A stretch of 64,000 nucleotides of DNA, taken from sequence record NC_010811.2; one strand, 5' to 3'. The notes beneath the pieces were generated by a model. It made no database searches. It was given only the letters and a program-made list of their open reading frames with translations, and was not told where the DNA came from. The position numbers and the translations under genes are program-made. Shown here piece by piece: positions 1,253 to 60,343 of this stretch (the first letter of the stretch is position 1; the number at the start of each line of letters is the position of its first letter).

Positions 1253-1861
1253 ATGGAATCGATTCAAGCCCTTGAAGTGCCGAAGCTGCGGTACCTGGAC
1301 GACGCTGTTCGCTTTCTAGCGGACATCAAGCTGCACACCACGGCCAGCGGTTGGAAGCGCGTTGAATTCTTCTACGAGAAGTACCGGCTGTTGGAAGCAG
1401 TGGAAGTGCAGGTCAGTCTGCAGTTCCCGGACCGGGGCGGACAGGTTATGGGCGGGTTGCTCACCACTCTGGCACGCCTCAAGCTGCAAGCCGCCGAGCA
1501 GCTCCAGATGCATTTGACTGCTCTCAACGAGGAAGCAGAAGCCAACATCAGTCCGCTGGCGTCGCGCTTCTGCCTGCAGTTGCGTTCCGAACTGCTGAAG
1601 ATGCGTGGCATCGGCCGCTTCATCGCCTCCTATTTGTACCGCGACGGCGCAACGTTCACTCACTACATCCAGTTGGCGGATGTGGGGCGCGCCAATCACG
1701 TGTATATCAGCTGTCACTTGGGGGAGAAGCGCTTCATCAAGCTGGCACACGAATTCGAGCTTCCGCCGTATGTGGCTAAGGACCCCGGACAGGCTGTGGT
1801 CACCGTGGACGATGCGGTGGCCGCCATCCGGCGACTCATCAAAGAGGAATTTGGGAAATGA
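1253..1861 (+). CDS. Hypothetical protein (probable virion/head protein)
   Basis: ATG at 1253 (MESIQALEVPKL); stop overlaps the next start (ATGA). Carries AxxRL-like segments (TLARLKLQAA, AAIRRL). Confidence 0.6.
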   Translation: MESIQALEVPKLRYLDDAVRFLADIKLHTTASGWKRVEFFYEKYRLLEAVEVQVSLQFPDRGGQVMGGLLTTLARLKLQAAEQLQMHLTALNEEAEANISPLASRFCLQLRSELLKMRGIGRFIASYLYRDGATFTHYIQLADVGRANHVYISCHLGEKRFIKLAHEFELPPYVAKDPGQAVVTVDDAVAAIRRLIKEEFGK

Positions 1862-2568
1862 AGAAAGCCACTGATCTGTTCCAAACACGTGATCGTGTTG
1901 TGGGACGTCGCGGTGCAAATGGCACTGAGCAACCTCAAGACCAGCCGTACGACAGCATGCAAGTGGATGATGAACTGCCGATCGGCATGTCGCGGGGCAA
2001 TCAATCGGATCACAGCGTGAACGATGTGGTGCAGCCCACGATTCCTGTGACTGGCGCCATCCGTCGTCTGCAGACGACTGCTGCCTCCAAGTATCCGCCG
2101 CTGCGTCAGCCACTGCCCAAGGAACCGCCCACGTACAACATCGTCGGGTACCATGCAACACCCATCGACAATTGGGCCTCGATCAAGGCGAAGGGACTGG
2201 CTATCGGCAAGTCGTCGCCCGCAGCGCAAGACTGGGTCGGTAAGTGGAGCGGCAAGGCCGTCTACTTCCATCTGCAGTTCCCTTCGCACGAGCTGGCGAA
2301 CGGCTACGACCCAGATACTGGCGAACCGTACACCATCACCATCGAGACCAAGCTGCATCACGGTGCGGAGTATTTCGTACCGGACGAAGATGCAGCGACC
2401 AACGTCGATGAGACGCCTGACGTCATCCGTCACAAAGGCTCGATCGCCGTCGGTTATCCAACGCCGCCCGGCGACTTCATCCGCGTACATCTGGTCGACA
2501 CGCTGGCCGCTCGCGCATGGGCCAAGGCCAATGTCAAGCGCTGGCCCGTTACCTTCCACAAGGTCTGA
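1858..2568 (+). CDS. Putative ADP-ribosyltransferase-fold protein with an N-terminal pro-region
   Basis: C-terminal ~150 aa has GYHATP..NWASIKAKGL, then AVYF and a downstream acidic FVPDED, resembling the H-Y-x ART core (YHGT..I...GL). It is preceded by the TGAIRRLQTTAA motif. Confidence 0.55.
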   Translation: MKKATDLFQTRDRVVGRRGANGTEQPQDQPYDSMQVDDELPIGMSRGNQSDHSVNDVVQPTIPVTGAIRRLQTTAASKYPPLRQPLPKEPPTYNIVGYHATPIDNWASIKAKGLAIGKSSPAAQDWVGKWSGKAVYFHLQFPSHELANGYDPDTGEPYTITIETKLHHGAEYFVPDEDAATNVDETPDVIRHKGSIAVGYPTPPGDFIRVHLVDTLAARAWAKANVKRWPVTFHKV

Positions 2569-2570
2569 TC

Positions 2571-4130
2571 ATGGCAACTCCTACTCCGCTCCTGTACAAC
2601 AAAGATCCGAACCAAGACACGATCATCGCGGCAGATGTCAGCCCGTGGCTATTGACGGGCGAAACGCTGACCAGTATCGCGCTGCTGCCGGTGTCTCCCA
2701 GCACCACGCCTGCGCTCACCGCTACACTGATCAGTGCGCCGAACATCACGCCCGCCAACATCACGCTGTCAGGGGGCGTAAACGGAGTTAGCTACGGATT
2801 CCAACTGCAGGTGACGACCAACGCGCGTGTGCTGCTGGTCCAAGTCGCCGCTTCCTGCTATTCCAATCAGCAGTTCGATCCGTACACAGCGCAGAATCCG
2901 TATGCGTACCAGGACCTTGTTGACCAGCTGGAAGTCGGTCAGTCTGCGGTGGGCACCGCGGTCTTCGCGTTCCCACCGCAGATCGATCCGAAGGGTGGCA
3001 ACGTCCGATACGAACTGCTGGCCGACGACGGCACCGTGTTCTCCACAGGCAACGCCTTCTCCTACGTGATCTCCAGCAACGGGCTGGCCAACATCGTGAA
3101 AGCGCAGTGCGTTGTGGTGGCGCCTACCACGTTGCCTCCGACGCTTCTGGGTCAGTCGTATCAACTGCGATACACGCTGGAGCTTCCGCAGTCGTCCGGC
3201 ATTCCTGCCGATCCACTGACCGGCAATCTTGGCCAGAACACGTTCTTCCAGTTCGAGAACATCACGATCGTGGACAACGTGAGCGTGCCGCTTGGTGCGC
3301 AGCCCACGGTCGAGCTCAAGGGCATGCCCGCGCATCTGTCGCTGGTCACGGACAAGATGTACGACAATGTGACGTTGGAGCTGCAAGCCAACAACCAGAC
3401 GCTGGCTGGTCCCAGTCCCATCACCGAATATCAGCGAACTGCTGACGGATGGGCATGGTCCGGTGTGCTGGACACGACGAACCTCACAGTGTCGCTGGTG
3501 CCTTACACCATCGTCTGGCGTTACTGGTCGTCCGCTGCGCCAAGCCTCGTGTATCAGGAAGCGACCGAGCTGTTCGTGGTGAATGCCAGCATGCTCACCG
3601 CCATGAACGATGTGCGCGCTCGCATCAACAAGGCGCATACCACGCTGTACGGAGCACCCGACATGCTATTCCCCAATCCCACCGTGATGACGTGGTTGCG
3701 TCGAGGCGCTGACATGTTCAACGGTGCGTACGGTCAGTTCACCGCCTTCACGATGACCAACGCGCTGGGCGTGATCCGCGAATACTGGCTGATCTGCGCT
3801 GAGAAAGCCGCGCTCGAAGCTCAACTGCTGGCCGAGGGTGAGAAGGCATTCAACTTCCAAGGCGCTGCCATCTCGTTGGACGTGGACCGGGTCACCGCCT
3901 ACGACAATCTGATCGGCAAGCTCCAGCAGCAGTTGGACACCGAACTCAAACCCATCAAGCAGAACCTCATCATCAAGGGCGTTACCAAGGGCGACGGATC
4001 GACCGATCCCACCAAGCTGCAAATCGGTGCGATCGGTGCAGTGGGCATCTCCATCACCAACGCCAACGTCTGGGGTCGCGCGGGTACGCCTTACGGTGCG
4101 TTCGGCCTCAACCCTGGAGGACTCACATGA
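2571..4130 (+). CDS. Putative head-tail connector/neck protein (multidomain)
   Basis: ATG at 2571. N-terminus KDPNQD..AADVSPWL..GETLTS resembles phage head-tail joining domains; beta-rich middle; helical C-terminus (EAQLLAEGEKAFNFQG..ISLDVDR). Structural context. Confidence 0.45.
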   Translation: MATPTPLLYNKDPNQDTIIAADVSPWLLTGETLTSIALLPVSPSTTPALTATLISAPNITPANITLSGGVNGVSYGFQLQVTTNARVLLVQVAASCYSNQQFDPYTAQNPYAYQDLVDQLEVGQSAVGTAVFAFPPQIDPKGGNVRYELLADDGTVFSTGNAFSYVISSNGLANIVKAQCVVVAPTTLPPTLLGQSYQLRYTLELPQSSGIPADPLTGNLGQNTFFQFENITIVDNVSVPLGAQPTVELKGMPAHLSLVTDKMYDNVTLELQANNQTLAGPSPITEYQRTADGWAWSGVLDTTNLTVSLVPYTIVWRYWSSAAPSLVYQEATELFVVNASMLTAMNDVRARINKAHTTLYGAPDMLFPNPTVMTWLRRGADMFNGAYGQFTAFTMTNALGVIREYWLICAEKAALEAQLLAEGEKAFNFQGAAISLDVDRVTAYDNLIGKLQQQLDTELKPIKQNLIIKGVTKGDGSTDPTKLQIGAIGAVGISITNANVWGRAGTPYGAFGLNPGGLT

Positions 4131-4519
4131 ATGACTTCGGCTCCTGGCTGTGGGAGCTTCTTCGCAGCCTGAAGTGGTCCGATCTTCCGCTGTTGGTGGC
4201 CTGCATCACTGGTCTGTGGCTGTTGTATCGTCTGCAAATGGCGCGCGACTCCTACGACCTGCGATGGTTGATTCTCGACAGCAAGACGCGGCAACCTTCC
4301 ATTCACAAGCTCGGTCAGCTGACGGCACTGGTCGTCAGCACCTGGGCATTCGTCTATCAGACCAATCACAATCAGCTGACCGACTGGTTGTTCATCGGCT
4401 ACTGTGGTGTGTGGGCCAGCTCTACGCTCATCAACTCGCGCATCAGCAAAGATCGCTTGCCAAACGTGAACGACGGCACTGCCCCAAGCGACGGTGATCC
4501 ACAGGCAAAGGATCATTGA
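4127..4519 (+). CDS. Small membrane protein (about 3 hydrophobic segments; holin-like)
   Basis: 130 aa with hydrophobic stretches LPLLVACITGLWLLY, LGQLTALVVSTWAFVY and WLFIGYCGVWASS. Confidence 0.55.
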   Translation: MNDFGSWLWELLRSLKWSDLPLLVACITGLWLLYRLQMARDSYDLRWLILDSKTRQPSIHKLGQLTALVVSTWAFVYQTNHNQLTDWLFIGYCGVWASSTLINSRISKDRLPNVNDGTAPSDGDPQAKDH

Positions 4520-4520
4520 C

Positions 4521-4528
4521 AATTTGAT
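4521..4528 (+). promoter_or_regulatory. AATTTGAT motif (putative phage late promoter)
   Basis: Intergenic copy about 97 nt before the ATG at 4626; recurs upstream of many structural genes. Confidence 0.5.
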
Positions 4529-4625: not shown

Positions 4626-4985
4626 ATGTTGAAGAATGCAGTACACCGTCTGCGGGCTACCGCCGTTCAAGAGCTGGAAGAAGAGCAAGAAGTCGTTGCT
4701 CAATTCGACCGCACCAAGGACAAGGAACTGCGAGATCTGCAAAACGCTATGCGTGGGGGTGGAGTCGTCTTCAAGTTGGATAAGTACCACCTCTACCATA
4801 AAACGAATCAACGGGAAGTCGCCGAGGAGTTGATGACTGTGTTGAAGATCTTGGATCAACTGGGCCACAAGGCTCGTGTTGTTCCCGGGGTCCTTGCACG
4901 TCCCACCTTCAGCGTGAAGTGTGAAACAGGTCTTGTTCTCCAGCGTCTCAACAACGACGTCCGCCTTTTCTTCTTTATTCCTTAA
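4626..4985 (+). CDS. Small hypothetical protein with AxxRL leader (putative internal head protein)
   Basis: Starts MLKNAVHRLRATA; 119 aa. Confidence 0.6.
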   Translation: MLKNAVHRLRATAVQELEEEQEVVAQFDRTKDKELRDLQNAMRGGGVVFKLDKYHLYHKTNQREVAEELMTVLKILDQLGHKARVVPGVLARPTFSVKCETGLVLQRLNNDVRLFFFIP

Positions 4986-4994
4986 GGAATCATC

Positions 4995-5489
4995 ATGAGT
5001 CAACAGATCAACCATACGCAAGCCAAAGCTGCGCTGACGGCTGCCGGTTTTCCGGTGTCGGCTGGCAGCAACTGGAACAACGTGGACCAAGGTTCGTGGG
5101 ACCAGTTCGCAGCCAGCGCTGCCTACGGAAAAGTCGCCTACGACCTGTACTCGACCAACTACGGTTTCTCGTTCCCCGTGATGCCGGACGCGGTGGCCAA
5201 TGCTGCTGCGAGCGGTGCCTACAGCGCCACTCTGGGTGTGACGCCGCTGACCGCTACGCATGCGGTTGCCATCACCAACTTCGCTTGGAATCTGGTGGAA
5301 ACCAACGGTCCGGGTACGTCGTACGTGTGGGACTTCGGCGACGGCACCGGCACGACGACTACCAGCACGGCAACGGGTCCTGCGAACCACACGTATGCAA
5401 CGGCTGGCTCGTACACGCCGAAGGTCACGGTCACGGTGGGTGGCGTTCCGCACCTCATCTCGGCCGCAGCTCCGGTCGTGGTGTCGTAA
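4995..5489 (+). CDS. PKD (Ig-like) domain protein, probable virion surface/decoration protein
   Basis: Canonical PKD signature YVWDFGDG...NHTYATAGSYTPKVTVT; SD-like AAGGA upstream. Confidence 0.8.
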   Translation: MSQQINHTQAKAALTAAGFPVSAGSNWNNVDQGSWDQFAASAAYGKVAYDLYSTNYGFSFPVMPDAVANAAASGAYSATLGVTPLTATHAVAITNFAWNLVETNGPGTSYVWDFGDGTGTTTTSTATGPANHTYATAGSYTPKVTVTVGGVPHLISAAAPVVVS

Positions 5490-5806
5490 TGTACGCCCGT
5501 CGCGTTCGTTCTCGAGCGCGAAACGGGTACGGCATATCCTCCATCCGGCGCGATTCGTATTCTACGGTGAACGGTATGAATACGAAAGCCGGATGGTGGG
5601 AACTCCATCGGCAAGTTGAGAAACGATCCGGTGGGCTATGCGAAGCCCGGATCGCCGGAGTGCGATGCGGTAAGCGCGGCAAGGACGTTCACCACATCGT
5701 AAAGCTGAGTGATGGCGGTACCAACTCGATGGCTAATCTTATCCATCTGTGTGAAGACTGCCATGACCGTAGACACAACCACATGTTCCGGAGACGGAAG
5801 AAATGA
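5489..5806 (+). CDS. Small HNH endonuclease
   Basis: ATG at 5489 overlaps the previous TAA. CEA..RC...DVHHIVKLSDGGTNSMANLIHLCEDCHDRRH is a zinc-binding HNH motif. Confidence 0.85.
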   Translation: MYARRVRSRARNGYGISSIRRDSYSTVNGMNTKAGWWELHRQVEKRSGGLCEARIAGVRCGKRGKDVHHIVKLSDGGTNSMANLIHLCEDCHDRRHNHMFRRRKK

Positions 5807-6114
5807 CGTACAACATCAGCGCAGCAACAAAGCGTCTCCAAGGTAGCTTGGAAGTCAATGCCAACAAACTGAAGACAGCCAAAGATGTGCATCGTGCACT
5901 GTCCTTCTACCCAGGTGTCGTGAAAGACAAGGGGATCATGGCCGAGCTTGCCGAAAAGGGGGATGCGCCAGCACCGAAGGATGCTTTCGTTGAGGTACGC
6001 GGGTCGCACATCGTTCCGAAGCATCTCGAGCACATGCACGATCTCGGGATCGAAATCGTATCGATCGAAGTTCTTGGTAGCGCTCATTACGAGCTGCAGG
6101 TGAAATTCCACTGA
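5803..6114 (+). CDS. Small hypothetical protein with AAxxRL leader (putative internal head protein)
   Basis: Starts MTYNISAATKRLQG; 103 aa. Confidence 0.65.
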   Translation: MTYNISAATKRLQGSLEVNANKLKTAKDVHRALSFYPGVVKDKGIMAELAEKGDAPAPKDAFVEVRGSHIVPKHLEHMHDLGIEIVSIEVLGSAHYELQVKFH

Positions 6115-6121
6115 AGACATC

Positions 6122-6508
6122 ATGGCCTACGACATCACAGCAGCAGTCAGCCGCTTGGCTGGCACCAAGTGTGCAGTGTTCGCCGATGCACACAGCGAAG
6201 CGGGTATCGCGCTGAAGGAGATCGCCAAGATCCTGGGTCCGCACTTCCTCAAGGACGAGCGGCCCGGCGAGCAGGTCATCATCTGGCGTACTTCTCAGTT
6301 CAAGGCTGAGCTGTCGCTGAACTTGGACGACGACGTGCTGGACTTCACGTTCAAGGACAAGGGCGCCACCGCTGGCTTCTCGGCCGAAGGCTACAACGCG
6401 CGAACCCTGTTCCAGGACATTCGGCACAACATCACGCAGTACCGTCCGACCAAGAAGGTGCCGACGGACGTGCAGATGGTTCGTGACAAGTTCGAACATC
6501 TGCAATAA
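6122..6508 (+). CDS. Small hypothetical protein with AAxxRL leader (putative internal head protein)
   Basis: Starts MAYDITAAVSRLAG; 128 aa. Confidence 0.65.
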   Translation: MAYDITAAVSRLAGTKCAVFADAHSEAGIALKEIAKILGPHFLKDERPGEQVIIWRTSQFKAELSLNLDDDVLDFTFKDKGATAGFSAEGYNARTLFQDIRHNITQYRPTKKVPTDVQMVRDKFEHLQ

Positions 6509-6517
6509 GGAACGATC

Positions 6518-7420
6518 ATGGATCAAGAACGACTGAAGCAACTCATCGCGCTGTTCCTCGAAGCAAACCCGGAACCCAGCGACGCGCAGTTCCACGCGTT
6601 CGCCGAGTCGCTGGGCGTGGACAAGGAAACGCTGGAAGCTGTGTGCTACGAAATGCTGGGCGCTGAAATTCAGCACGAGAAGGACGAAGGCGACGATCAG
6701 CAGTTGGAGGAGCTGGTGGAAGGCGTGTCCACGCACTTCCCTGAAGGCATCGAGGTCGAAGACTTCGGTGTGGTGCAGGCCACGGCGCGACTGCGCCTGA
6801 CCGCTGCTGAAATCGTCGAGCAAGAAGGCGGCGGACAGGGTGAAGTCGGTATCAGCGAACAGCAAGAAGTGTTGCAGGGTGAAGGCGACGCCGAAACCAC
6901 GGACACCGACAACCTGCTGTTGACGGATGGCGCTCCGGTCGGTGATACGACGGACGACGAGATGCAGGACAGCGCGTTGAACGACGGCGCAGGTCCGGGG
7001 GATACGGGTTTGGGCATCGACACGCAGAAGGCATTGCTGCTGAACGATGGGGCACCTGCTCTGCAGCTGGAAAGCGCTGCCCTGCGGCTGACCGCTGGTG
7101 AACGACCTGAAGTATTCGGGATGCCTGCTTACCATCTGTCCAAGAGCAGCGGCACGATCGACCAGCTTGGTCAGGTAGCCGACCGCAAGCCCGAGAAGAT
7201 CACTGGCATTGCAGTCAACACCCCGAAGGGCACAAAGAAGTTCTACTTCTACGGGTCTTCGTCGCTCACCAAGAAGGTCGGCGCCTTCATCAAGTTCAAG
7301 GGCATGAACGGCATCGTGGACGTGCTGGGCGTCATCGACAAGAACGGCAAGGTCAAGACCGGCCAAGAAGGTGCCACCTACGATCGTTCTGACCGGCGTC
7401 CGTACTACGTCTTTAAGTGA
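6518..7420 (+). CDS. Acidic pro-region plus basic C-terminal domain; putative head core/cargo protein
   Basis: About 190 aa rich in D/E with two internal motifs (ATARLRLTAA, SAALRLTA), then about 108 aa Lys-rich beta domain. Confidence 0.6.
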   Translation: MDQERLKQLIALFLEANPEPSDAQFHAFAESLGVDKETLEAVCYEMLGAEIQHEKDEGDDQQLEELVEGVSTHFPEGIEVEDFGVVQATARLRLTAAEIVEQEGGGQGEVGISEQQEVLQGEGDAETTDTDNLLLTDGAPVGDTTDDEMQDSALNDGAGPGDTGLGIDTQKALLLNDGAPALQLESAALRLTAGERPEVFGMPAYHLSKSSGTIDQLGQVADRKPEKITGIAVNTPKGTKKFYFYGSSSLTKKVGAFIKFKGMNGIVDVLGVIDKNGKVKTGQEGATYDRSDRRPYYVFK

Positions 7421-7427: not shown

Positions 7428-7727
7428 ATGTACGACATCAAAGCCGCGGTCAATCGCCTGCAGCTTACGGCCGACGCCAAGAGCACCATCATGATGCGTG
7501 TGGAGAAAGCGCTGGAAGCTGCGGGCATCGAGTGTGAGGTTGCTGGCAACAGCATTCAGGCGCCGCAGGCTCGCGTCCCGGAAGTCCTGCGTATCCTCAA
7601 GACGCTGGGCCTGCACTACATGGGGCCCCAGACGCGAGGCAATCACACGTTCAACTACAATCGCACGAGCAAGGAGTTGGGATGGATCGACTACTGCCCG
7701 CGTCGCGAACGTATCGACTTCGACTGA
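7428..7727 (+). CDS. Small hypothetical protein with AAxxRL leader
   Basis: ATG at 7428 after GAGGGA; MYDIKAAVNRLQLTA. Confidence 0.65.
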   Translation: MYDIKAAVNRLQLTADAKSTIMMRVEKALEAAGIECEVAGNSIQAPQARVPEVLRILKTLGLHYMGPQTRGNHTFNYNRTSKELGWIDYCPRRERIDFD

Positions 7728-7734: not shown

Positions 7735-8067
7735 ATGATCTCAATCAGTGCTGCGCTTTTGCGCCTCGCGTCTACCGAAGTACAGGCCGGTTCCCCGTCC
7801 GCTGCCATCAACGCAATGGAATACGTTGAGCAGACGGTTCGCAAGGCAGGGCTGGCCGTGCAAGACATCGATCACCGGGACACGACTCACATCGCAATGA
7901 CCATCAGCGGTCAGTTCGTGCCGGTGCTCAATGCGCTGACCAAAGCCGGATTCGTTCCGGACCGTACGCAGAAAAAGGGCAGCTTCTACAAGCGGCAGGG
8001 CATGGGTACGATCCGAGTGACTGCCGGTGTCTCGTTCCGTGAAACCATCGTCATCTGTCTGGGTTGA
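7735..8067 (+). CDS. Small hypothetical protein with AAxxRL leader
   Basis: ATG at 7735 after GAGGG; MISISAALLRLASTEVQA. Confidence 0.65.
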   Translation: MISISAALLRLASTEVQAGSPSAAINAMEYVEQTVRKAGLAVQDIDHRDTTHIAMTISGQFVPVLNALTKAGFVPDRTQKKGSFYKRQGMGTIRVTAGVSFRETIVICLG

Positions 8068-8924: not shown

Positions 8925-11900
8925 ATGGCGAATCCAACAATGGTGCGCGCTGACGCAACACGTCTGCGTCCGACGACCAACCTCATCATTCCACCGGGAC
9001 TCACTCTCCCGCGTAAGGAACTGAAGCAGAACTTCATGTACGTGTACACCGGCGCCTTCACGGGCACGGGCAGCTCGTTCATGACGCGTTTGTGGGCTTC
9101 CTCTTTCTTCCCGAGCCTCACCAACAGTCCGAAGTTTGGCAAGACTCGTCCTCGCGCGGTTGCCGATGGGCTGGCCAAAGAACTGCCGATGAACTTCCTG
9201 CGGCTGAAGAAGGTGGACACGCCGAACGATCCGCACTTCGTGGCCAGCGTTCCGCTGTATCAGTTCGCGTCGCATAGCAGCGAACGCACGCTGCGCTTCC
9301 TCATGGACCTGTTCATGGGCCAGCGCTGGTCCAAGACCTTGATCCAGCACACCGCCGAGCAACTGGATGAGGTGAAGGAGTGGAACCAGCAAGCGGCAGA
9401 AGCGCCGAAGGACCAACTGAGCGAGCGCGTGCTGCCCGCATCCCACGTCATCAACAACATGCGGCTGGACGCTATGGGCAGCGAAGCGCTGCGTCAGTGT
9501 CTGCTGCAAGTGCGGATCCAGTCCAAGGGTCTGTACAACGTGATCTTTGCTGACTTCAAGATCCGCAAGGAAGAAGCTCAGCAGCTGACGACCACGGAAT
9601 GGTCGATGCTGCGGTCTATCGACCTGTATCCGTTGCTCCTGCACTGGGTGCGTACCACCTTCGGTGATCGTGGACAGGCGCCGGTCGCGAGCTTCCCGGT
9701 CTCGAAGATCGCGTTCAGCCTTCCGCCGTCGCATGTGGAAAGCGCTCGCGTCAACGACCTCGGCATTTCCGTGGGTCCTGACGGTGCTCCGTACTTCCTA
9801 CCCCGGTCAGTGGACAAGAACCAGACCATCCTGTACGAAGATCGTTACACGGGAGCGGGCACTCGCAACGACGGCAGCTTTGCGCTATTGGATACAGAGC
9901 AGGGCGCCGAAGCGATGAGCTCGGGCCACGAGCCGAAGACCAAGCTGCCGCACAACATGGTGGTAGCCGTCGACTGGCTGAACAACAAGTACAGCTACAC
10001 GAACACCGAAGGCATGCTGTCGGTGATGGACCTCACGCGATTCCAGCCGGCGAACGTGGCGCACATCCACGAGCTGCTGCATTCGCGATCCATCAACGAG
10101 AAGCACGTGTCGTGGTTTGTGTCGCTGGGCGAAGCCGCAGGCGTGCCGCTTACCGCCTTCGAGACGCTGCCGTCGGATTTGGAGGACGTGCAATCCGAGA
10201 CGATGAAGGAAACGCTGAGCCGCACCGCAGGTCCTCTGCTGTGGTTCAAGACCGCTCGTCAGTCGTATGCGCAGGACATCAACGATCTGGTGCCCTTCGC
10301 GTCGATCTCGGTGAACGGCTATAGCGCGATGCGTCCGCTGGCACGCTACTTCAAGCTGATCGAAGCGGCTGTGCGCAACAACATCGAACCCGTCTACCTG
10401 AAGTACAGTGTGATGACGGTGGCCGAGATGTTCTCGTGGCTGGTGCTCATCACGCACTACACAGACGATCTGCCGCGACTCAAGGCTGACGACGCAGCGT
10501 ATCGCCATGCCGCGCTCAATCAGCGCGTGGACCCGGACTACGAAGTTCCGAGCATCCCGCTGATGGCCCCAAACATGGGCTTCCTGCCGCACCAGAAGAA
10601 GGTGCGCAACCTGATGAAGGACAGCCCGGACTTCGCAATCATGCCGGTGCAGACGGGCGGCGGCAAGTCCATCCTTCTGCTGACCGACCTGCTGCTGGAG
10701 TTCAAGGCCAATCGCAACGAACCATATCTGGTGTTGTGTCCGTCGCACTTGGTGCCCAACTACGTGAAGGAAGCAGTGTACTTCACGGGCGGCAAGCTCA
10801 ACGTGATCGCCATCACCAATCCGGCCATCCGCCAGAACGGCTGGAAGCGGTTGCAGGCCATCATGATGGCGGCACCTCGCAACACGGTCGTGGTTGTGGC
10901 GCTGGACACGTTGAAGTTCCGTCCGCGTACTGTGTCGTACGGCACGACTCCGGTCGACGTGTTCCCGGTCATCGACTTCCTGCGTCAGTTCAAGTTCGGC
11001 TACGTGGCAATCGACGAGGCACACCGCATCAAGGGAGCGACTGCTCGCAACAAGTCAGTGATGGCACTGGTCGCTGACATTCCGAAGAAGCGTCTGGCGT
11101 CGGGCACCTTCGTGCACGATTCGCCGTCGGACTTGGCGATGACCATCGCTGCGTTGGATCCCACGCTGTTTGGTACGCGCGAGGAATTCAACGACAAGTA
11201 CGGGTTGGAGGTGCGTGGAGGCCGCGTTATCAAGTGGAAGCCCAACGCACAGCGCGAGATCATGCAGAAGATCCGCAGCCGCGTGGTGATCGCCGGTGCA
11301 ATGCGCAAGGAATGGGCTGCGTTCCTGCCCAAGAAGGTGGAATGGGTTGGTGGTGTCAACTTGACTCCGGCGCAGCAAGCAGTGTACGAAGATCTGTTGA
11401 ACAAGGTCATCGAGCAGATCGAGCAGGACGCCAAGACCAACAAGGCGTTGCAGGACTTCGTGAAGGGACGCCACGCCAAGGACAACGTCCGTGACGATGA
11501 AGCGGACGTGGAAGCCGAGGACGAAGTCGAAGACGAACGCGACGATGTGGATGAGGACGCTGGTGAAGATCTCAGCGCCATGCTCAACCCGTATCTCGCA
11601 CGCCTCGAACAGTTCTTGGTGGCACCGGGCAGCGATCCTTTGGGTGCAGCACTGCTCAAGGGTGAAGACCTGCTGAGCCCGAAGGTTGCGCTCATCTACA
11701 AGCGAATCCGCCTACACCTTGAGGGCGGTGAAGCTGATGGCAAACCATACGGTCCGTTCCCAGGCAAGGTCATCGTGTTCTGCAATCAGGTGGCCGCAGC
11801 CGAAGAGATCTTCAACAGCGCACCGCCTGATCTGAAGAAGAGTGGTCTGCTGTACAAGGCCAGCGACAAGGTGGAAATCCTGTCGCAGCTGGAGAACAAC

Positions 11901-14566: not shown

Positions 14567-15367
14567 ATGGCAAAAGTGCCTCAAGCATTCACGCAGGCGA
14601 AGCGTGCGCAAGTGCGTAAGCCTCAGGTCGCATCCGAAACCTCGATGGAGGATGCAATCCTGACGCGTCAGGTCAACACCTATCAGCAATCCATCGAGAC
14701 GAAGGACGCGGAGCACGATCAGACGCTGCTGCACGGGTTGGATTTCACGACATGGTTGCCGTTCGCGGCTAAGACCTATCGTATCAGCCCGCGCATCGAG
14801 GACTACATCCTCGTCACGACCGTGATCTGTCCGTCGGAAATCCCGAACCGCAACGGCATCGCGTTCCCGACCTCGGAGCTGGTGACATTCCAGCCACCTC
14901 CGATGAACCGGATGGTGTACAAGGCGTGGGCTGGATGTCCGGTGCATCTGGAACACGATAACGAAGTTCACGAACGAGCCTACGGCGTGATCCTCGACAC
15001 GTCGTTCCACAAGGTGGAAGGCTACGGTGGCGGCAGCATCTGGAAGGTCATGGGGCTTCTGGCAATCGACAAGCAGAAGAATCCGGACATCGCCCAGGAA
15101 GTGCTGCAAGGGTCGATCGACACGTACTCCATGGGTGCGCTGGTTGACTACTTCACGTGCGGATACTGCGGAGCGGAGAACACTGGTCGCAATCGCTGTT
15201 CGCACATCACGTCTATCAAGGACGTGAACTTCAACCTGCACAAGGACTGGAATGGGAAGTCGCATCTCTCGTTCCTCAATGCGCATGGCATTCAACCGAT
15301 CGAGTGCTCCATCGTCCGTGATCCGGCGTGGGCTCCTGCACTCAGCGACGCCGTGAGGGAGTGGTGA
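14567..15367 (+). CDS. Putative prohead maturation protease with a Cys/His zinc-finger insert
   Basis: PNRNG.AF, PVHLEH, YSMG (candidate nucleophile Ser), CGYCG..RCSH and ECSIVRDPA resemble HK97/assemblin-type prohead proteases; lies upstream of the scaffold and MCP. Confidence 0.65.
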   Translation: MAKVPQAFTQAKRAQVRKPQVASETSMEDAILTRQVNTYQQSIETKDAEHDQTLLHGLDFTTWLPFAAKTYRISPRIEDYILVTTVICPSEIPNRNGIAFPTSELVTFQPPPMNRMVYKAWAGCPVHLEHDNEVHERAYGVILDTSFHKVEGYGGGSIWKVMGLLAIDKQKNPDIAQEVLQGSIDTYSMGALVDYFTCGYCGAENTGRNRCSHITSIKDVNFNLHKDWNGKSHLSFLNAHGIQPIECSIVRDPAWAPALSDAVREW

Positions 15368-15828
15368 TGTACGAGATCAAAGCGGCGGTTGACCGCCTGA
15401 AAGCAACGGAGGTCGTCGCTGGATACAGTGGCACGAAAGTCGGTGACCTCAACAAATATGTCCGCGCCCTGAACCCGAAAGTCAAACCCATTGGCAACTC
15501 GGGTATGGGCGGCGGTGGTCGTGCTGGTGAAGCTGCGTGCTTGGTATCGGCCGAAGACGCATTGGATTTGGTGAACGCCCTGATCAAAGACGGATGGACA
15601 GGACGCCGTACTTCGAAGAGGGCCGGTCCTCCAGGACGAGAAGCTACGAAGTACGAGTACATGATCTACCGTCCGAAGGACGATCTTCCGGGTCTTCCGT
15701 ACATCACCGTGTCGAAGCCCGCGTCCGATGGCAAATGTCGTATCCGCTTGAGCCAGGAAACTGCTGCTGCAATTCGTTCGCGTCGCAACAGCAAGTTCAT
15801 GTTCAATCCGGTCAAGCGTTACAAGTAA
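15367..15828 (+). CDS. Small basic hypothetical protein with AAxxRL leader
   Basis: MYEIKAAVDRLKATEVVA; start overlaps the protease stop. Confidence 0.65.
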   Translation: MYEIKAAVDRLKATEVVAGYSGTKVGDLNKYVRALNPKVKPIGNSGMGGGGRAGEAACLVSAEDALDLVNALIKDGWTGRRTSKRAGPPGREATKYEYMIYRPKDDLPGLPYITVSKPASDGKCRIRLSQETAAAIRSRRNSKFMFNPVKRYK

Positions 15829-15922: not shown

Positions 15923-15930
15923 AATTTGAC
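15923..15930 (+). promoter_or_regulatory. AATTTGAC variant (putative late promoter)
   Basis: CTGCAATTTGAC immediately after the terminator, about 73 nt before the ATG at 16004. Confidence 0.45.
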
Positions 15931-16003
15931 AATAGCGACAGGTTCAGAATGCGCGCGCAACCTAAATCTGCCTCGTTCCATCAATCTTCCTAGAGAGGAC
16001 TCT

Positions 16004-17554
16004 ATGGCCATTGGCACCCGCAAGAAGCGCGTGTTGGCAGCTAAGGACTTCAGCGGTCCGGGCTCCACCACCCACTTCCCCAACGATGAGAAGATGGCGG
16101 ACGTCAAGTCCGACGTCGAAGTCAAGAACAACCAGGATCCGCAGGACCTGCTGATCGATCCGGATGACGAGTCGGGTTCGACTCACTTCCGCAACGAGGA
16201 GAAGCTCAACGACAAGTCGAAGGGCAATCCCGCAACCGCCAAGGCCGTCAAGACCACGGCTGCCGAGGTGGACGTGGAACACGACGAAGCCGAAGGCTAC
16301 ACGCAAGACCTGTCGGCGCTGGACGAAGGTCTGCCGAAGAAGGGCGATGAAGCCGATCTGAAGGCAAGCACCAAGACCACCGCCGCCGAAGACTGCGACG
16401 ACAAGGGTCCGCAAGCTACCACGCACAGCCCGAACGGTGACGACGTGGCCGAGCCGGCGGAAGGCTACCTGACGAACGCTGAACTCGAAGACCTGGACGA
16501 AGAGTTCGAGGACGAAGAGGAAGTGGACGCAGACGCACTGGCCGACGACGCGGGCCAGAACCCGCAGCAATCGCTGCTGGACGTGACCGACGAGCTGGAA
16601 GAAGTCGACGCCGAGATGGAAATGGGTGACGACGAGCACGAGTTCACGGACGACGTGGAAGAAGACGACATCGCGGAAGCGGACGTCGACAGCATGCCGA
16701 TCCTGGACGTGGACGACGCCGACGATGACGGCGACGACGTGGTGTTCGCCAGCGTCGGCAATCGCCTGCACGTGATCAAGGGCAACCGCATCGTCGCTTC
16801 GATGGGCAAGAAGCTGGCAGCCAAGGCCAGTGTCGAGGACCTGTACCTGAGCGAGCAATTCCAAGACGCCTCGTACGCCGAGTTCTCGAAGCACGGCCTG
16901 CGCGCTGGTCTCCGCAAGATGGGCTTCGCTCTGGCCACGGTTGACGTGGCGAAGAACGAGCTGATCAACAAGCGCGTGGAAGCCAAGGCCAAGAAGGTGA
17001 CGGCTGCTGTTCGTCGTACGGCGCAAGCGTCGAACGATGCGCTGGGCCAATGCTTGGCGATCGCTGCAGTCGGCATCAACCGTCAGTACTTCAAGGACTC
17101 GCGCAACGAACTGCGCGCTGCTCTCGAAAGCGAACTGGCGGCTGCTGGTGTGCGCGGTGCACGTCAACTGCTGAAGACCGTGTTTGCCAAGCATGGCGTG
17201 TCCTACGCCAAGGACATCCTGACGCTGGCCAACTCGCTGGTCACCAAGCCGGAAGAAGTGCGCAACGCCTACGCTGAAGCTCTGGACCTGACGTCGGACG
17301 GCGAAGTCGAGGAGCTGGATGACATGGAAGGCGACGAGTTCGGTCAGCCGGCCAATCCGGACTTCATGACGGAAGCCGACCAGGACGAAGACTTCGTGGA
17401 TGAGTTCGAAGAAGAGATCGAAGCCCCGGAAACGGTGCATGCAGCTCTGGCACGACCCATCCATCGTCGTCAGAAGGTTCAGGCTGCCAGCTACTCGTCC
17501 GGCGCACAAGCTGTGCTGGCGGGCACGGCCAAGCTGCCGTTTGCGCAGTTCTAA
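16004..17554 (+). CDS. Putative prohead scaffold/core protein
   Basis: ATG after GAGAGGA. Very acidic N-terminal half and helical C-terminal half; lies between the protease and capsid genes; repeated TTAA/VTAA/VQAA motifs. Confidence 0.6.
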   Translation: MAIGTRKKRVLAAKDFSGPGSTTHFPNDEKMADVKSDVEVKNNQDPQDLLIDPDDESGSTHFRNEEKLNDKSKGNPATAKAVKTTAAEVDVEHDEAEGYTQDLSALDEGLPKKGDEADLKASTKTTAAEDCDDKGPQATTHSPNGDDVAEPAEGYLTNAELEDLDEEFEDEEEVDADALADDAGQNPQQSLLDVTDELEEVDAEMEMGDDEHEFTDDVEEDDIAEADVDSMPILDVDDADDDGDDVVFASVGNRLHVIKGNRIVASMGKKLAAKASVEDLYLSEQFQDASYAEFSKHGLRAGLRKMGFALATVDVAKNELINKRVEAKAKKVTAAVRRTAQASNDALGQCLAIAAVGINRQYFKDSRNELRAALESELAAAGVRGARQLLKTVFAKHGVSYAKDILTLANSLVTKPEEVRNAYAEALDLTSDGEVEELDDMEGDEFGQPANPDFMTEADQDEDFVDEFEEEIEAPETVHAALARPIHRRQKVQAASYSSGAQAVLAGTAKLPFAQF

Positions 17555-18411: not shown

Positions 18412-19500
18412 ATGGTTCGTCAAAAGGTTAAGATTGCTGCTTCCAAGAAGCCGGTGGTTGCCGCAACCGAGTACAAGTTCGGCGGCTCGAATGAGCGCGC
18501 TGTGGGCGCCAACGGTGAACTGAACGCGAGCAACAAGCGCGATCTGATCAACCGCCAAATCCAATTCATCCAGGCCGCCTCGCGTGGCGAACTGGCTGCT
18601 GACGGTCAAGTGCTGAAGGCCGAAGCCGCCGCGCAAACCTCGAAAGAACTGGTGCAAGCTGCGTTCAACGACAGCGAAGCGCACCGCGTTCTGGGTGAGC
18701 GCATGGCCGACAGCCTGTACCAGACCTGCAACCGTCAGGGCTTCGCTCGTAAGTACCTGACCAAGATCACGGTCGAACAAGGCAGCATTCCGCGCTTCCC
18801 GGTCCGTCTGAAGAACGTGGTCGCCGCGTACTCGACGTCGCCGACGCAGATCCAGTCGCAAATCACGCTGGACAAGTGGCTGACCCCGCCCGAGCTGCAA
18901 CTGGTGGCTCGTCCGTTCATTCCCCTGAACGACCTGAACCAGTCGGCCGGCGACGTGCTGCAAGAGAAGTACGTGGAAGCCACCGAAGCCATCATGGTGT
19001 CGGAAGACCGCCTGTGGTACAACCTGGTGAACTCGATGGTGGGTGTCGACAACCCGCTGTCCATCATCAGCGGCTCGCTCACGCCGTACTCGTTCATGCA
19101 AGTGCAACAGAACGTGACGCGCTGGGGCCTGAAGGCACCGCACGTGCTGATCGCCAGCGATCTGTACGTCGACATCGTCGGCAACAGCGACTTCTACTTG
19201 GCCATCGACCCGGTCGCTCGCCACGAACTGCTGCTGACCGGTGAAATCGGCGTGATGTACGGCTGCACGATCACCTCGGACGCCTACCGCTTCCCGGAAC
19301 ACAAGGTGCTGAACCGCGGCGAATTCTTCGTCGTGGCCGACGCCCTGAACCATGGCGCGTACTCGGATCGCGGCGGTCTGCAATCGCAGCCGACCGACAT
19401 CACCGTGGAACGTGTGCCGGGCCGTGGCTGGGTGATGTACGAATCGCTCGCCATGTCGGTTGCCAACAGCACCTCGGTGGCGAAGGGTCTCCGCATCTAA
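18412..19500 (+). CDS. Major capsid protein (HK97-like fold, inferred)
   Basis: 362 aa with highly biased codons, following protease, scaffold and decoration genes. C-terminal pattern GEIGVMYGCTITSDAY...GEFFVVA...GWVMYESLAMSVAN resembles capsid proteins. Confidence 0.75.
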   Translation: MVRQKVKIAASKKPVVAATEYKFGGSNERAVGANGELNASNKRDLINRQIQFIQAASRGELAADGQVLKAEAAAQTSKELVQAAFNDSEAHRVLGERMADSLYQTCNRQGFARKYLTKITVEQGSIPRFPVRLKNVVAAYSTSPTQIQSQITLDKWLTPPELQLVARPFIPLNDLNQSAGDVLQEKYVEATEAIMVSEDRLWYNLVNSMVGVDNPLSIISGSLTPYSFMQVQQNVTRWGLKAPHVLIASDLYVDIVGNSDFYLAIDPVARHELLLTGEIGVMYGCTITSDAYRFPEHKVLNRGEFFVVADALNHGAYSDRGGLQSQPTDITVERVPGRGWVMYESLAMSVANSTSVAKGLRI

Positions 19501-23100: not shown

Positions 23101-24132
23101 ATGGCAGATGAAAGTGAAGTGTTCAAGCCGAAGTCCTACGGCGAGCAGAACTGGAAGACCATCGAGAAGCGGCAGGAGATTAAGGAGCCTTCGGAAAGCA
23201 CGAAGCCCGTGGGTACAGGTGGCAAGCAGGGCTCCAATCAGTACCAGACGCAGTCGGCTCACAGTCCTGGGGCTCGTGAGCTGTTGCCGCAGAACGATGC
23301 GCAGTATGCGAGCGATCAGGCCAGCATGCGACCTGAAAGCACAAAGCGCGAATCGTTGTACGACGAGACCGCGGTCAAGTCGGGTCCCAGTCGCTTCCTA
23401 ACCGAAGCGGAGATCCGTGCTCGGGGCGGTCGAGTGTTGGCCGAACAGGCGCTTGAGCAAGCGCTGAAAACGATGGCGTCCAAGGGAGGCGTGTCTGATG
23501 CTACTGGCAATCCAAATGCAAATCTGGATGGGGGTATGGCGGCTAGTGATCCTCAGCCCAATGCTCAGCGCGTTCTCAACGGAAGCCGACTCGGCACCGA
23601 AGACGACAGCCTGACAAAGGATCAGGAGAACTACGGCACTGGATCCAACATGGATCGTGGGGCCGGAACGTCCACACCTCGTCCGTCGCGCAGTGTGTTG
23701 CCTCCGTTGTACGACACGGACACCAGCAGCTCGTATGCGCGCGAGACCAACGTGAACCGCAACACAACGGCCCGCGACCCCGAGCATATCTGGGACGTAT
23801 CGCAGCTGACGACGGGCGCCGTTCACCGGCTGACCGCCACGTCGACCATTGACAACGAGCCTGACGTCGGCGGTGGCATCAACATGACGGGCGAGGAAGG
23901 GTCGCGGCATACGTGTCCTGGCACGATCACCTGCACGGCAGCAGTCCAACGGCTGGCCAAGGACGTGCACGATGGGGACTTCGATCCTGCGGGGCGCGCC
24001 ACCGGCGATCGCATGATCACCAACGATCCCAAGAACACCGGCTATCTGAATGTCCACAGTTCGGAAGTGGATGCAGATGCCGACCCTCGTCTGTGGAACA
24101 TGGCTAATCAGCCCATGGGGCAAGCCGGATAA
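23101..24132 (+). CDS. Hypothetical, largely disordered protein with internal AxxRL motifs
   Basis: 343 aa, hydrophilic; contains TGAVHRLTA and TAAVQRLA. Confidence 0.6.
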   Translation: MADESEVFKPKSYGEQNWKTIEKRQEIKEPSESTKPVGTGGKQGSNQYQTQSAHSPGARELLPQNDAQYASDQASMRPESTKRESLYDETAVKSGPSRFLTEAEIRARGGRVLAEQALEQALKTMASKGGVSDATGNPNANLDGGMAASDPQPNAQRVLNGSRLGTEDDSLTKDQENYGTGSNMDRGAGTSTPRPSRSVLPPLYDTDTSSSYARETNVNRNTTARDPEHIWDVSQLTTGAVHRLTATSTIDNEPDVGGGINMTGEEGSRHTCPGTITCTAAVQRLAKDVHDGDFDPAGRATGDRMITNDPKNTGYLNVHSSEVDADADPRLWNMANQPMGQAG

Positions 24133-57151: not shown

Positions 57152-57172
57152 GAGATCAGCTTGGAGATAGAA

Positions 57173-59368
57173 ATGACCCTCAAGTATATGAACGGGTTCG
57201 AAACGTGCCGCGACGATTCCGATCTTCGCGCACAGGGTTGGCTGGCCAGCCCCACGTCGGACTATGTAGGTTTTCCAGGAGCGTCGACCAGTGTGGGCGC
57301 CGTCGGCCTGCGTCAGTGGTCAGCAGCGTCTGCAGGCGCAAACGTCGTTGGCGTAGCAGCGGCGGCGGACCCCGGCTATCTGAACACTGGCATCACCGTG
57401 AACCAAGCGTGGACTGCTGGCGGTTTCACTTTCAACGCCAATGCCACCTTCTACGGTGGAACTGCTGGAAACGCCATTGGTTCATTTATTGGAGCCAGTC
57501 AGTACCCGAACCAGATTGTGTACGACGGTACGCAATACTGGGCAATTCAGACCAATCCACTGCAAGTGGTGACGTCTACTGACCTTGTGAAATGGACAGC
57601 TACTCCCGCTCAGCCTTCCGGCTTGAGTGCTACGACTGCCAACAGCGTGTCGTACATGGGTGGAGGCGTGGTCATGGTAGTGACCGCGGGTTCGGCTTCG
57701 GTGTCCTGCTTGTACACGTCGAACAACGGAGTGTCGTGGTCAACGCAGAACTTCGGTGCGTCGGGCGGCGGCTCCATATACGGGGCCGGATGTGCGACGG
57801 GGAACGCCACCTATCCGCACTGCGTCGCCATCAACAGCAGCGCTACGTCCAGCTTCAACGGAGTGTGGGTGGGGACGCTGGGTGGCACCATGACGCAGGT
57901 GACGTCTGGTGGCTATGCGGCAACCGGTCTTCTGTCGCGACCCAAGGTCATCAACGGATACATCATCTGCACGCTGGGCAACAACGGAGTGTACAGTGCG
58001 CAGGCGTCAAACGCCAGCCTCAACACCACTGGCGCGTGGACAAAGTGGACGTACACTGGGCAGAACTTGACTGACGTCAACTACTTCCAGCCAGCGAATG
58101 CTTGGTTCGTGTCTGGTCACCAAGCGGGGGTCGTCAGCATCCCAAATACGGGCGGTGCCGGAACTCCAGTGCCTCCGACCACGGGATCGGGCACCAGTGT
58201 GTACGCAAACCCTGTGTATGGGCTGATGGTGAGCAGCACAAACATCACGCTTGCGGTATTCTCAAACGCCACAGGCAACGTATCGCTGCTCACCTCGACG
58301 ACAGGTGCATCAGGCAGTTGGGTGAACACGTCGCGCGTTCTTCCGTATTTGGGTGCCAGCGTCAACGGCTGGAAGGACGTGTACTACGATGGAACGAAAT
58401 ACATCGTGTGCAGCTACGCAAGCAGCGCAGCGACGTCAGCTTGCATTGCGACCACCAGTGACGGGTTGAAAGACTGGCAGGTCAAGTACATGAGCGATGT
58501 GACGCCCGGCACTACGGGCGGATTCAGTGGACTTGGCGTGTGTGCTGCAACTGCGGCTCCCACATCAGGCAGCGCGTGGACGCAGGTTGGAGGCGTTGCA
58601 TGGCTGAATTGCAGCACGCCGTCTGCGGGCAGTTCCACGATTTCGCTGTACACAGCGGCGGGAACTAGTGCCAACTTGACAGCGACGCAGTCGTCGTCCA
58701 TCCTCACGCATTCGTATGAAGTGCGAGCAGTAGCAGCGGCCACCGCCAACAGCTTCAACATCTCGTTCTACATCGACGGCACACTGCAGGGGACGACGGC
58801 GTCGCCAGTGGCGTTCGGTTCGGGAACCAGCGACACAACGTCGCTGCTCATCCTCAATATGCCACGCTCCGGTAACTGGCAGCAGTTCGACGACGTGGTG
58901 CTGACGTTGGACGATGGGCTGGGTATCGTTGGGCCGCTGGGTCCCATCAACATCGTGTCTCGGCGTCCAACTGCTGACGTCAGCACGCAGTGGACACGTG
59001 TTGGCACAGCAGCCAGCAACGCGCTGTCGGTGAATCAGAATGCGCTCAGCTCGCAAAGCTCGAACTACGTGAACACCTACACCGACGGTGGGAAGGACGT
59101 GTATTCGTCAACGGATACTGTCCCATCCAACTACAAGGTGAAGGCGGTCCAGGTGGAAGCGTACTTTGCCAAGCTGGGGACCAGTGCGCCGGTTGCAAAC
59201 GTCGGCATCAAGAGCGGATCCACTGAAAGCGACAGCGCGAATTTGACTGTGACGTCGGCCAACGCCACCTACGTATCGTCTATCGCGCAGACGGATCCAA
59301 GCACGGGCGCTGCCTGGACACAGACGGGAGCCAACAACTCACAGTTCGTCATCAACAAGGTGAGCTAA
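57173..59368 (+). CDS. Putative fibre-associated/receptor-binding protein (paralog 2)
   Basis: MTLKYMNGFET; colinear with paralog 1 from end to end (DxGYLNTGITVNQAWTAGGF, GGFSGLGVC, PRSGxWQQFDD, YKVKAVQ, KVS*). Confidence 0.65.
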   Translation: MTLKYMNGFETCRDDSDLRAQGWLASPTSDYVGFPGASTSVGAVGLRQWSAASAGANVVGVAAAADPGYLNTGITVNQAWTAGGFTFNANATFYGGTAGNAIGSFIGASQYPNQIVYDGTQYWAIQTNPLQVVTSTDLVKWTATPAQPSGLSATTANSVSYMGGGVVMVVTAGSASVSCLYTSNNGVSWSTQNFGASGGGSIYGAGCATGNATYPHCVAINSSATSSFNGVWVGTLGGTMTQVTSGGYAATGLLSRPKVINGYIICTLGNNGVYSAQASNASLNTTGAWTKWTYTGQNLTDVNYFQPANAWFVSGHQAGVVSIPNTGGAGTPVPPTTGSGTSVYANPVYGLMVSSTNITLAVFSNATGNVSLLTSTTGASGSWVNTSRVLPYLGASVNGWKDVYYDGTKYIVCSYASSAATSACIATTSDGLKDWQVKYMSDVTPGTTGGFSGLGVCAATAAPTSGSAWTQVGGVAWLNCSTPSAGSSTISLYTAAGTSANLTATQSSSILTHSYEVRAVAAATANSFNISFYIDGTLQGTTASPVAFGSGTSDTTSLLILNMPRSGNWQQFDDVVLTLDDGLGIVGPLGPINIVSRRPTADVSTQWTRVGTAASNALSVNQNALSSQSSNYVNTYTDGGKDVYSSTDTVPSNYKVKAVQVEAYFAKLGTSAPVANVGIKSGSTESDSANLTVTSANATYVSSIAQTDPSTGAAWTQTGANNSQFVINKVS

Positions 59369-59369
59369 G

Positions 59370-59627
59370 ATGGCTTCTAATCCCAATGAGAACCTATATG
59401 CGAAGGCCATAGCCGAGCAGGTTGTCTGGGTGGCTGGGGTACCTGCTGAAGCGATCGCGGTCGCTCAGCAGATACTCGTCGTGCAGATGACGGAACCGAA
59501 GGCGCAGGCTGTTGCCGAAAACGTGCTGCTGGTACCCGGTGTCCAGGCGCAGGCGCTGGCCGTCGCCGAACAGTGGCTGTTGGGGGCGCCGACCTACGTA
59601 CAGACCGCTACATGGTGGACAAGTTGA
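59370..59627 (+). CDS. Small protein with an internal repeat (QA.A(V/I)AEQ.L.V)
   Basis: 85 aa; the AKAIAEQ/AIAVAQQ/AQAVAEN/ALAVAEQ unit occurs four times. Confidence 0.55.
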   Translation: MASNPNENLYAKAIAEQVVWVAGVPAEAIAVAQQILVVQMTEPKAQAVAENVLLVPGVQAQALAVAEQWLLGAPTYVQTATWWTS

Positions 59628-59638
59628 ACGAGGAACGT

Positions 59639-60343
59639 ATGCCGAAGATCAAAGCTGAAAAGCAAGCAACTGATCCACCAAAGAACGACAAGGACTTCAC
59701 GTGGCAGAGGAACATGGAGAAGAAGTATAAGGGCGCACCTAAGCGCAATCCAGGATCCGCGCCACCTGAAGGAACCTTCAGCAAGAGTCCTTCGCAGATC
59801 GCCAACGATCTGAAGATGCATTCGAAGGACTACGGGCAAGCGAGTCGTCGGCTGAACAGCTACATCAACCGACAAGGTCGCAATCTTCAGGGAGCGGATC
59901 GTGCGCGACTGTACGATGCGAAGGAACACCTGAAGAATGCCTACGGCCGTCAGGAACATAAGCCGAAGCAGCAGACGGCAGACAGCAGCGCAGGGCCTGC
60001 CCTGTACTGTTTGACGAAAGGACACAACCTTGACGATGGGACAGTGGATTTGCTGACGTCTGTCCCAGATCTACGGGAGAAACAAGCCGTGAACGATCAT
60101 CAGCTACTTGCAGCATGTGCTCGCCTGAAGGCCAGCGTATTGAACTCGGAACAGGATCCGAATCAGCGCATGTCGTCGGTTGAAGTGCAAAGCGACAGCA
60201 CAGTAGTTCCCAACCTGGAAGAGACCAACATCGCAGAATCCACATCTACCATTGATGGACTGGACACTGCGTTCGAGGAGGGACAGGGCGGGGCACCCAT
60301 CAACATCAACGCAGCGCTTCACCGTTTGCAGTCGCCAGTCTGA
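59639..60343 (+). CDS. DUF3175-like N-terminal domain protein with AAxxRL motifs
   Basis: GTFS.SP.QIA..LK...RRLN.YINRQGRNL...RARL..AK..L resembles DUF3175 (from memory); C-terminal LAACARLKA and ININAALHRL. Confidence 0.5.
   Translation: MPKIKAEKQATDPPKNDKDFTWQRNMEKKYKGAPKRNPGSAPPEGTFSKSPSQIANDLKMHSKDYGQASRRLNSYINRQGRNLQGADRARLYDAKEHLKNAYGRQEHKPKQQTADSSAGPALYCLTKGHNLDDGTVDLLTSVPDLREKQAVNDHQLLAACARLKASVLNSEQDPNQRMSSVEVQSDSTVVPNLEETNIAESTSTIDGLDTAFEEGQGGAPININAALHRLQSPV

Follow-up and report, generated by a model that had tools for sequence, protein, structure and literature searches.

The internal proteins of phage T4 form a highly diverse set, whose members have the capsid targeting sequence alone in common (PMC3012670), and T4 propeptides direct proteins to the prohead core (PMC10052503). 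In the case of SPN3US, gp245 cuts after the motif A-X-E; most of the propeptides are 111–254 residues long, and some have 20–24 residues (PMC10052503). Outside T4 and the phiKZ group, how jumbo phages choose the proteins that they package in their heads is largely unknown. Here we describe a short peptide tag found in the Ralstonia jumbo phage phiRSL1 (NC_010811.2 / AB366653.2), a tailed phage in which portal, terminase, sheath and tube are annotated. The window that we analysed is a stretch of 64,000 nucleotides of this genome (record bases 62001–126000). The positions of open reading frames (ORFs) inside it are given in window coordinates, "record" positions refer to the whole phiRSL1 genome (231 kb), and the remainder of the genome was added to the scans for the tag.

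The tag is a real, non-random signal at the level of the peptide, carried by proteins whose bodies are unrelated. It consists of about 12 residues (the conserved motif has 11–12) with a core A-x-x-R-L, flanked by an aliphatic residue 5–6 positions before the Arg, and by Ala and then Thr, Ser or Asp 3–4 positions after it. About 15 otherwise unrelated proteins of phiRSL1 bear it, as do dozens more in relatives. We propose that it is a position-independent docking peptide which would bring a varying set of proteins into the prohead, where some of them would then be trimmed by the protease; we give this reading a probability of about 0.5. The literature searched yielded no description of this motif; the primary phiRSL1 papers lie outside that search, and a prior description is possible.

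According to its annotation, the window comprises a + strand morphogenesis block (ORF115–146, which includes the connector ORF118, the protease ORF132, the capsid protein ORF136, the sheath ORF140 and the tube ORF142), a − strand replication block (ORF147–170) and a + strand fibre and lysis block (ORF171–188). The initial annotation of this DNA had noted a leader shared by about ten unrelated proteins. All the strings that it quoted are present, at the N-terminus of ORF120, 123, 124, 126, 127 and 133 and inside ORF117, 125, 141 and 186; the list has to be extended by copies outside the window, in ORF109, ORF111, ORF112 and ORF210, and the strings seen in ORF116 are weak. Of the 74 proteins encoded in the window, 6 have the core A..RL starting between residues 3 and 10, whereas shuffled sequences lead one to expect 0.23 (Poisson 1.7e-7), and an extended pattern has 13 matches in the window, versus 1.26 ± 1.08 in shuffles. 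Ten of these are in the late + strand block (8385 aa), two in ORF171–188 (7325 aa) and one in the replication block (5142 aa); the tag is concentrated in and around the genes for head assembly. The initial annotation did not see the motif in the proteins of the replication block, and this is nearly so, the exception being one weak regular-expression match in ORF160.

A scoring matrix made from the window copies was run on all six frames of the whole phiRSL1 genome. Its top 16 matches are all in annotated frames, and it recovered copies on which it had not been trained, in ORF112 and at the N-terminus of ORF210, with scores above that of every off-frame match. Likewise, a matrix built from relatives alone recovered the N-terminus of ORF109. 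Eight of the nine N-terminal copies in the genome lie within record 58.2–77.4 kb, and the ninth belongs to ORF210, whose gene directly follows the portal gene. The whole-genome scans gave no carrier among the approximately 100 small early genes. Where a residue is identical between copies, the codon is shared in 29% of cases, which is equal to the expectation from random codon usage and shows that selection bears on the peptide, not on the DNA. A DNA repeat or a translation-initiation signal is ruled out by this codon analysis; a secretion signal is ruled out too, since the tag has no hydrophobic core.

When all the carriers are compared with one another (blastp), the similarity is confined to the tag (10–15 residues), except for a few longer but weak matches between bodies (ORF127 and ORF133, E 8e-4; ORF111 and ORF124, E 2e-3). 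The comparison of the ORF124 family profile with the leaderless bodies of ORF133, ORF127 and ORF126 (hhalign) gives probabilities of 2% at most. Both results agree with the earlier claim that the motif is shared by unrelated proteins. Across 28 carriers from relatives, the tag is the sole invariant part. One may suppose, on the basis of the weak body matches, that the shared string is a functionless remnant of common ancestry in a paralogous family, or else a DNA-level repeat, but this is very improbable considering the outcome of the leaderless comparison, the presence of a NUDIX fold among the carriers, the random codons, and the fact that the part which is invariant in those 28 carriers occurs at either protein end. 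In Pfam, the same 28 carriers have four weak single matches, all below the curated cut-offs; one carrier weakly matches ATLF (a lethal-factor-type domain, E 6e-4) and another HicA (E 9e-3).

The relatives examined were BcepSaruman (Saruman below), the Logan contig L009, 12 IMG/VR loci around homologues of the protease, and Achromobacter phage Motura. The tag is present in all of them (Saruman, Motura and about 10 metagenomic relatives), with at least 13 N-terminal copies in 40 kb of Motura. The relatives' form is one residue shorter between Ala-Ala and Arg-Leu (Ala-Ala-x-Arg-Leu); our first, ungapped scoring matrix missed this form, which was corrected by inspection. In 39 distinct N-terminal leaders, numbered from the Arg (the A at −3 and the R-L being fixed by the search pattern), position −5 is Leu or Ile in 27 cases, −4 is Asn in 19, −2 is Ala in 22, +3 is Ala in 26 and +4 is Thr, Asp or Ser in 32. 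A Met precedes the core by 3–7 residues in 30 of the 65 coding-strand matches in relatives, and almost never on non-coding strands. A tagged gene directly adjoins the protease gene in L016, L021, L019 and L011, and in several relatives a further group of carriers is encoded immediately behind sheath and tube. The set of carriers differs greatly between relatives, as is expected for accessory cargo. A 576-residue carrier (Saruman gp075; L008 12566–14296) has internal copies in addition to its N-terminal tag; in gp075, a short motif with many His, Pro, Lys and Tyr residues occurs three times, and related N-termini are seen in L013 and L016.

We found no tag near the protease gene of PaBG (34% identity between the protease homologues), a phage whose particle proteome, with processing, has been published, nor did we find any in Vibrio phage GR7B (45% identity). 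That the tag is missing from these more distant phages shows it to be specific to the clade of phiRSL1, which also includes the Saruman-like Burkholderia phages, Motura and many metagenomic genomes of 210–250 kb.

Copies of the tag are found at either terminus or within disordered linkers, and sometimes in pairs. In ORF109, the only carrier with a recognisable enzymatic fold, the tag occupies residues 1–13 and the NUDIX domain residues 27–146, and the orthologue Saruman gp100 has the same layout. In the AlphaFold2 (AF2) model of ORF120, residues 1–24 have a predicted local distance difference test score (pLDDT) below 50, and the domain (residues 28–119) a score of about 90. From this layout of ORF109 and the unstructured leader of ORF120, we conclude that the tag is an appendage, located outside the fold. 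The leader had been proposed to be an amphipathic helix, and our results do not support this: its helical hydrophobic moment is just 0.33–0.44, and the model shows it unstructured. The tag is retained in P0002 and Saruman gp092, the orthologues of ORF120; for the domain of ORF120, the fold comparison was uninformative. Homologue searches based on a word index gave almost nothing for ORF120 and ORF124, and the ORF124 family was obtained by an exhaustive search of 1.8 billion proteins. The tag is kept in 8 of its 8 representatives, followed by a linker of 0–10 residues and then by a conserved acidic-Ala-Gly junction.

Other carriers show the tag at places where orthologues end or start. The L009 orthologue of ORF117 has 70 residues, matches residues 3–74 and terminates directly after the tag. 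That of ORF125 (246 residues, 53% identity over residues 1–193) also terminates directly after the tag, as does Saruman gp090, the ORF125 counterpart. Saruman gp099, the counterpart of ORF112, terminates after the tag, and Saruman gp094, which has no detectable similarity to ORF117, terminates in it. The first copy in ORF141, 240 residues in, corresponds to the leader with which Saruman gp077 and L009 7487–7837 begin, and the agreement extends to the residues that follow; over the whole proteins, the similarity to ORF141 is weak. Orthologues that end or start at the tag, in L009 and Saruman, show that genes of this clade split and fuse there. ORF210 has one tag at each end. ORF116 is a doubtful member: its first string is missing from the orthologue Saruman gp095, and the second is conserved in L009 as an apparent piece of a folded domain.

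The protease encoded among these genes is clearly of the prohead type. ORF132 matches phrog_18299, a family of head maturation proteases (E 7e-113), and has 78 viral prohead-protease matches; His130 and Ser188 are invariant in 34 homologues. The best match of its AF2 model (pLDDT 83) in the Protein Data Bank (PDB) is T4 gp21 (5jbl), with a probability of 0.99, and it is the only one above noise; searching solved structures with the sequences of ORF132 and ORF117 gave no match for either. Judging from the stop codon of ORF132, which overlaps the ATG of ORF133 at base 15367, the protease gene is translationally coupled to that of a carrier. Two homologues of the protease, P0061 of Burkholderia phage BCSR5 and H38 of phage NCTB, are named "endolysin", which is probably a misannotation. 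ORF134 is annotated as an "ATPase"; it is conserved in all the relatives, its N-terminal half is very acidic, and from this feature and its position it looks like a scaffolding protein. The first 20 or so residues of the capsid protein ORF136 are conserved in nine relatives and end in small-x-Glu (Gln instead of Glu in one of them), which makes this site a candidate for the maturation cut. A small-x-Glu/Asp site also occurs within a few residues after the tag in 6 of 8 N-terminal leaders of phiRSL1. Clade-wide, such a small-x-acidic site follows the tag in only 27 of 52 leaders, versus 30% of background windows, which is a modest enrichment. Cleavage is plausible for some of the carriers, but these figures do not make it a general property.

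It has to be considered whether the tag could be a mere exosite for ORF132, marking the points where multi-domain precursors are cut, with no role in targeting. This would account for the copies that lie between domains or where the parts of an orthologue are encoded by separate genes, and it would agree with the adjacency and coupling of the protease gene to a carrier, and with the fact that SPN3US-type proteases cut after a short motif (PMC10052503). However, copies at the extreme C-terminus (ORF186, ORF210, Saruman gp090, gp094 and gp099, and two L009 proteins) have nothing downstream to release, the stretch that separates the tag from the conserved acidic site can have any length between 0 and 10 residues, and the core structural proteins that should be the main substrates, the capsid protein and the scaffold-like protein, are devoid of tag. 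We therefore consider this explanation unlikely. The initial annotation spoke of a candidate targeting and cleavage code in a shared leader, with internal copies in some proteins. The N-terminal leaders are confirmed; a pure cleavage code is not, as the C-terminal, linker and duplicate copies and the points of gene splitting and fusion fit a docking peptide better.

The position independence of the tag, and its multiple copies in disordered regions, are also typical of short linear motifs that bind a hub, which could be a phage or host chaperone, an unfoldase or degradation machine, or a cytoplasmic assembly factor, in a function unrelated to packaging. One carrier is indeed a metabolic-type enzyme encoded outside the structural operon, and an entry in the reference list of PMC10052503 reports that the N-terminus of a T4 head protein steers proteins to the chaperonin. 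On the contrary, the carrier genes cluster tightly with those of the portal, protease, connector, sheath and tube, we found none among the small early genes, and the replication block contributes nothing beyond the weak match in ORF160. It is thus unlikely that the tag serves such a hub.

If the tag is a docking peptide for the prohead, we infer the following sequence of events. Lying on a flexible stretch that does not belong to the carrier's fold, the tag would bind one component of the prohead, most likely the acidic, scaffold-like protein ORF134 or else the interior surface of the shell or portal. The head would thereby come to contain small proteins and at least one enzyme, the NUDIX hydrolase. 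In carriers that have a small-x-Glu/Asp site after the tag, the latter would probably be cut off by ORF132, the gp21-like protease. At infection, the enclosed proteins would leave with the DNA.

Several observations weigh against this proposal. The carriers of the window have no family match in Pfam, PHROGs or PADLOC, and no carrier matches a known family of internal head proteins, anti-defence proteins or effectors. Many leaders in the clade, about half of the total and most of those in Motura, lack an acidic, cleavage-like site nearby. As for the head as the compartment, ORF109 belongs to a metabolic block, just upstream of the head genes, and two carriers are encoded beside tail genes: ORF141, between sheath and tube, and ORF186, among fibre genes. 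These last two carriers, and the second carrier cluster that follows the sheath and tube genes in several relatives, may instead suggest that the tag loads proteins into the tail (the lumen of the tube, or the baseplate), like the N-terminal payload signals of contractile injection systems. But the majority of carriers are encoded beside the connector, protease and portal, and the baseplate and tail proteins ORF194–205 have no tag, which makes loading into the tail quite unlikely. In ORF208 (record 146554–147672), near the tail and baseplate genes, what may be a variant of the tag comes after a Met located 10 residues inside the annotated frame.

The coordinates of the carriers and of the neighbouring genes are collected in Table 1.

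Table 1. Tagged proteins of phiRSL1 and genes of their surroundings (window positions, unless marked as record positions).
Feature	Position	Strand	Description
ORF109	record 58252-58755 (outside window)		NUDIX hydrolase, N-terminal tag
ORF111	record 60166-60627 (outside window)		carries tag
ORF116	1214..1861	+	two weak tag-like strings (1454-1492, 1811-1849); doubtful member
ORF117	1858..2568	+	disordered N-terminal part, tag at nt 2044-2082, C-terminal domain of ~160 aa
ORF119	4127-4519		small predicted membrane protein within head gene block; phrog_1322
ORF120	4626..4985	+	N-terminal tag at nt 4626-4664, acidic linker, folded alpha/beta domain
ORF122	5489-5806		HNH endonuclease gene within head gene block
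ORF123	5803..6114	+	small protein, N-terminal tag at nt 5812-5850
ORF124	6122..6508	+	N-terminal tag at nt 6131-6169, variable linker, acidic-Ala-Gly junction, domain
ORF125	6518..7420	+	conserved N-terminal domain, tag at 6773-6811, acidic linker, tag at 7064-7102, extra C-terminal domain
ORF126	7428..7727	+	N-terminal tag at 7434-7472
ORF127	7735..8067	+	N-terminal tag at 7741-7779
ORF129	8925-13592		1555-aa SNF2/DEAD helicase; phrog_62, E 7e-301
ORF132	14567..15367	+	prohead serine protease, T4 gp21 / assemblin fold
ORF133	15367..15828	+	N-terminal tag at 15373-15411
ORF134	15926..17554	+	acidic protein between protease and capsid protein; candidate tag receptor
ORF136	18412..19500	+	major capsid protein, no tag, small-x-Glu site near residue 20
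ORF141	23101..24132	+	long disordered N-terminal region, tags at 23806-23844 and 23929-23967
ORF186	59612..60343	+	internal tag at 60101-60139, C-terminal tag at 60302-60340

Knowledge of the tag corrects the starts of three genes. The RefSeq start of ORF126 (7491) removes the leader, and the ATG at 7428 has a Shine–Dalgarno sequence. That of ORF133 is a GTG at 15328, inside the protease gene and ahead of the leader, and the ATG at 15367 has a Shine–Dalgarno sequence. The true start of ORF111 is probably the Met at record 60211, which has a good one. The tag also explains the boundaries between domains in several proteins of unknown function.

Among the neighbours of the carriers, the helicase ORF129 lies in the middle of the head module, at the same place as in Saruman, Motura and L009. 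It has no tag, and it could be a head-packaged enzyme by analogy with the large antirestriction proteins of other phages. The HNH gene has the same place in the head block of Saruman and Motura.

A tag that is defined by its sequence makes it possible to list candidate packaged proteins for the whole clade from sequence alone. The 15 or so carriers of phiRSL1, whose functions are unknown except for the NUDIX hydrolase, are natural candidates for factors of early host takeover or anti-defence.

Regarding known systems, the closest one is the capsid targeting sequence of T4, and the initial annotation was right to choose the T4 internal proteins as the analogue: in T4 too, diverse proteins share a targeting sequence (PMC3012670), and in phiRSL1 a gp21-like protease is encoded beside the carriers. 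In both cases a short terminal peptide is common to unrelated proteins, a protease of the gp21 fold is encoded in the head module, and the set of cargo proteins varies between relatives. The two systems differ in several respects. The carriers of phiRSL1 have no homology to T4 internal proteins, and neither PHROGs nor Pfam links them to the families of the latter. The conserved motif of 11–12 residues also occurs at the C-terminus or internally, and it can be duplicated. In T4 the signal is removed by gp21, whereas half of the leaders in the clade of phiRSL1 have no acidic site nearby. Last, the phages belong to different clades, the capsid of the phiRSL1 type being a T=27 jumbo capsid.

The resemblance to SPN3US and phiKZ-like phages is that many head proteins are cut by one protease in these phages, and that short N-terminal propeptides of 20–24 residues exist; small-x-Glu/Asp often follows the phiRSL1 tag and is found near residue 20 of the capsid protein, but many leaders of Motura and other relatives have no such site. 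However, the element shared in SPN3US is a cut site of three residues, whereas in phiRSL1 it is a motif located upstream of any possible cut. The MuF polymorphic toxins and the Dar proteins of phage P1 are variable, travel in the head and are delivered together with the DNA, as we suppose of the phiRSL1 carriers. Unlike the latter, they depend on a folded adaptor domain or on specific partner proteins, and Pfam detects no MuF domain in the carriers of phiRSL1 or in those scanned in relatives.

The cargo-loading peptides of encapsulins are short, conserved sequences on a flexible tether, which occupy one or the other terminus of the cargo protein or recur within a disordered region, and which dock inside a shell of the HK97 fold. 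The phiRSL1 tag is similarly found at either terminus or in disordered regions, detached from the fold. On the other hand, phiRSL1 is a tailed phage with portal, terminase, scaffold and protease, and the binding of its tag to the shell is putative. It may be, although we regard this as tentative and rather doubtful, that the tag is a natural cargo-loading peptide of the encapsulin kind, which would attach to the HK97-fold shell on its inner side, or to the scaffold, from any position in the protein and with no need for cleavage. The clade would then use it to bring a rapidly changing collection of small proteins and enzymes, such as the NUDIX hydrolase, into the host in advance of gene expression. 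If the tag does bind the shell or the scaffold, it would link the assembly of phage heads with the loading of cargo into encapsulins.

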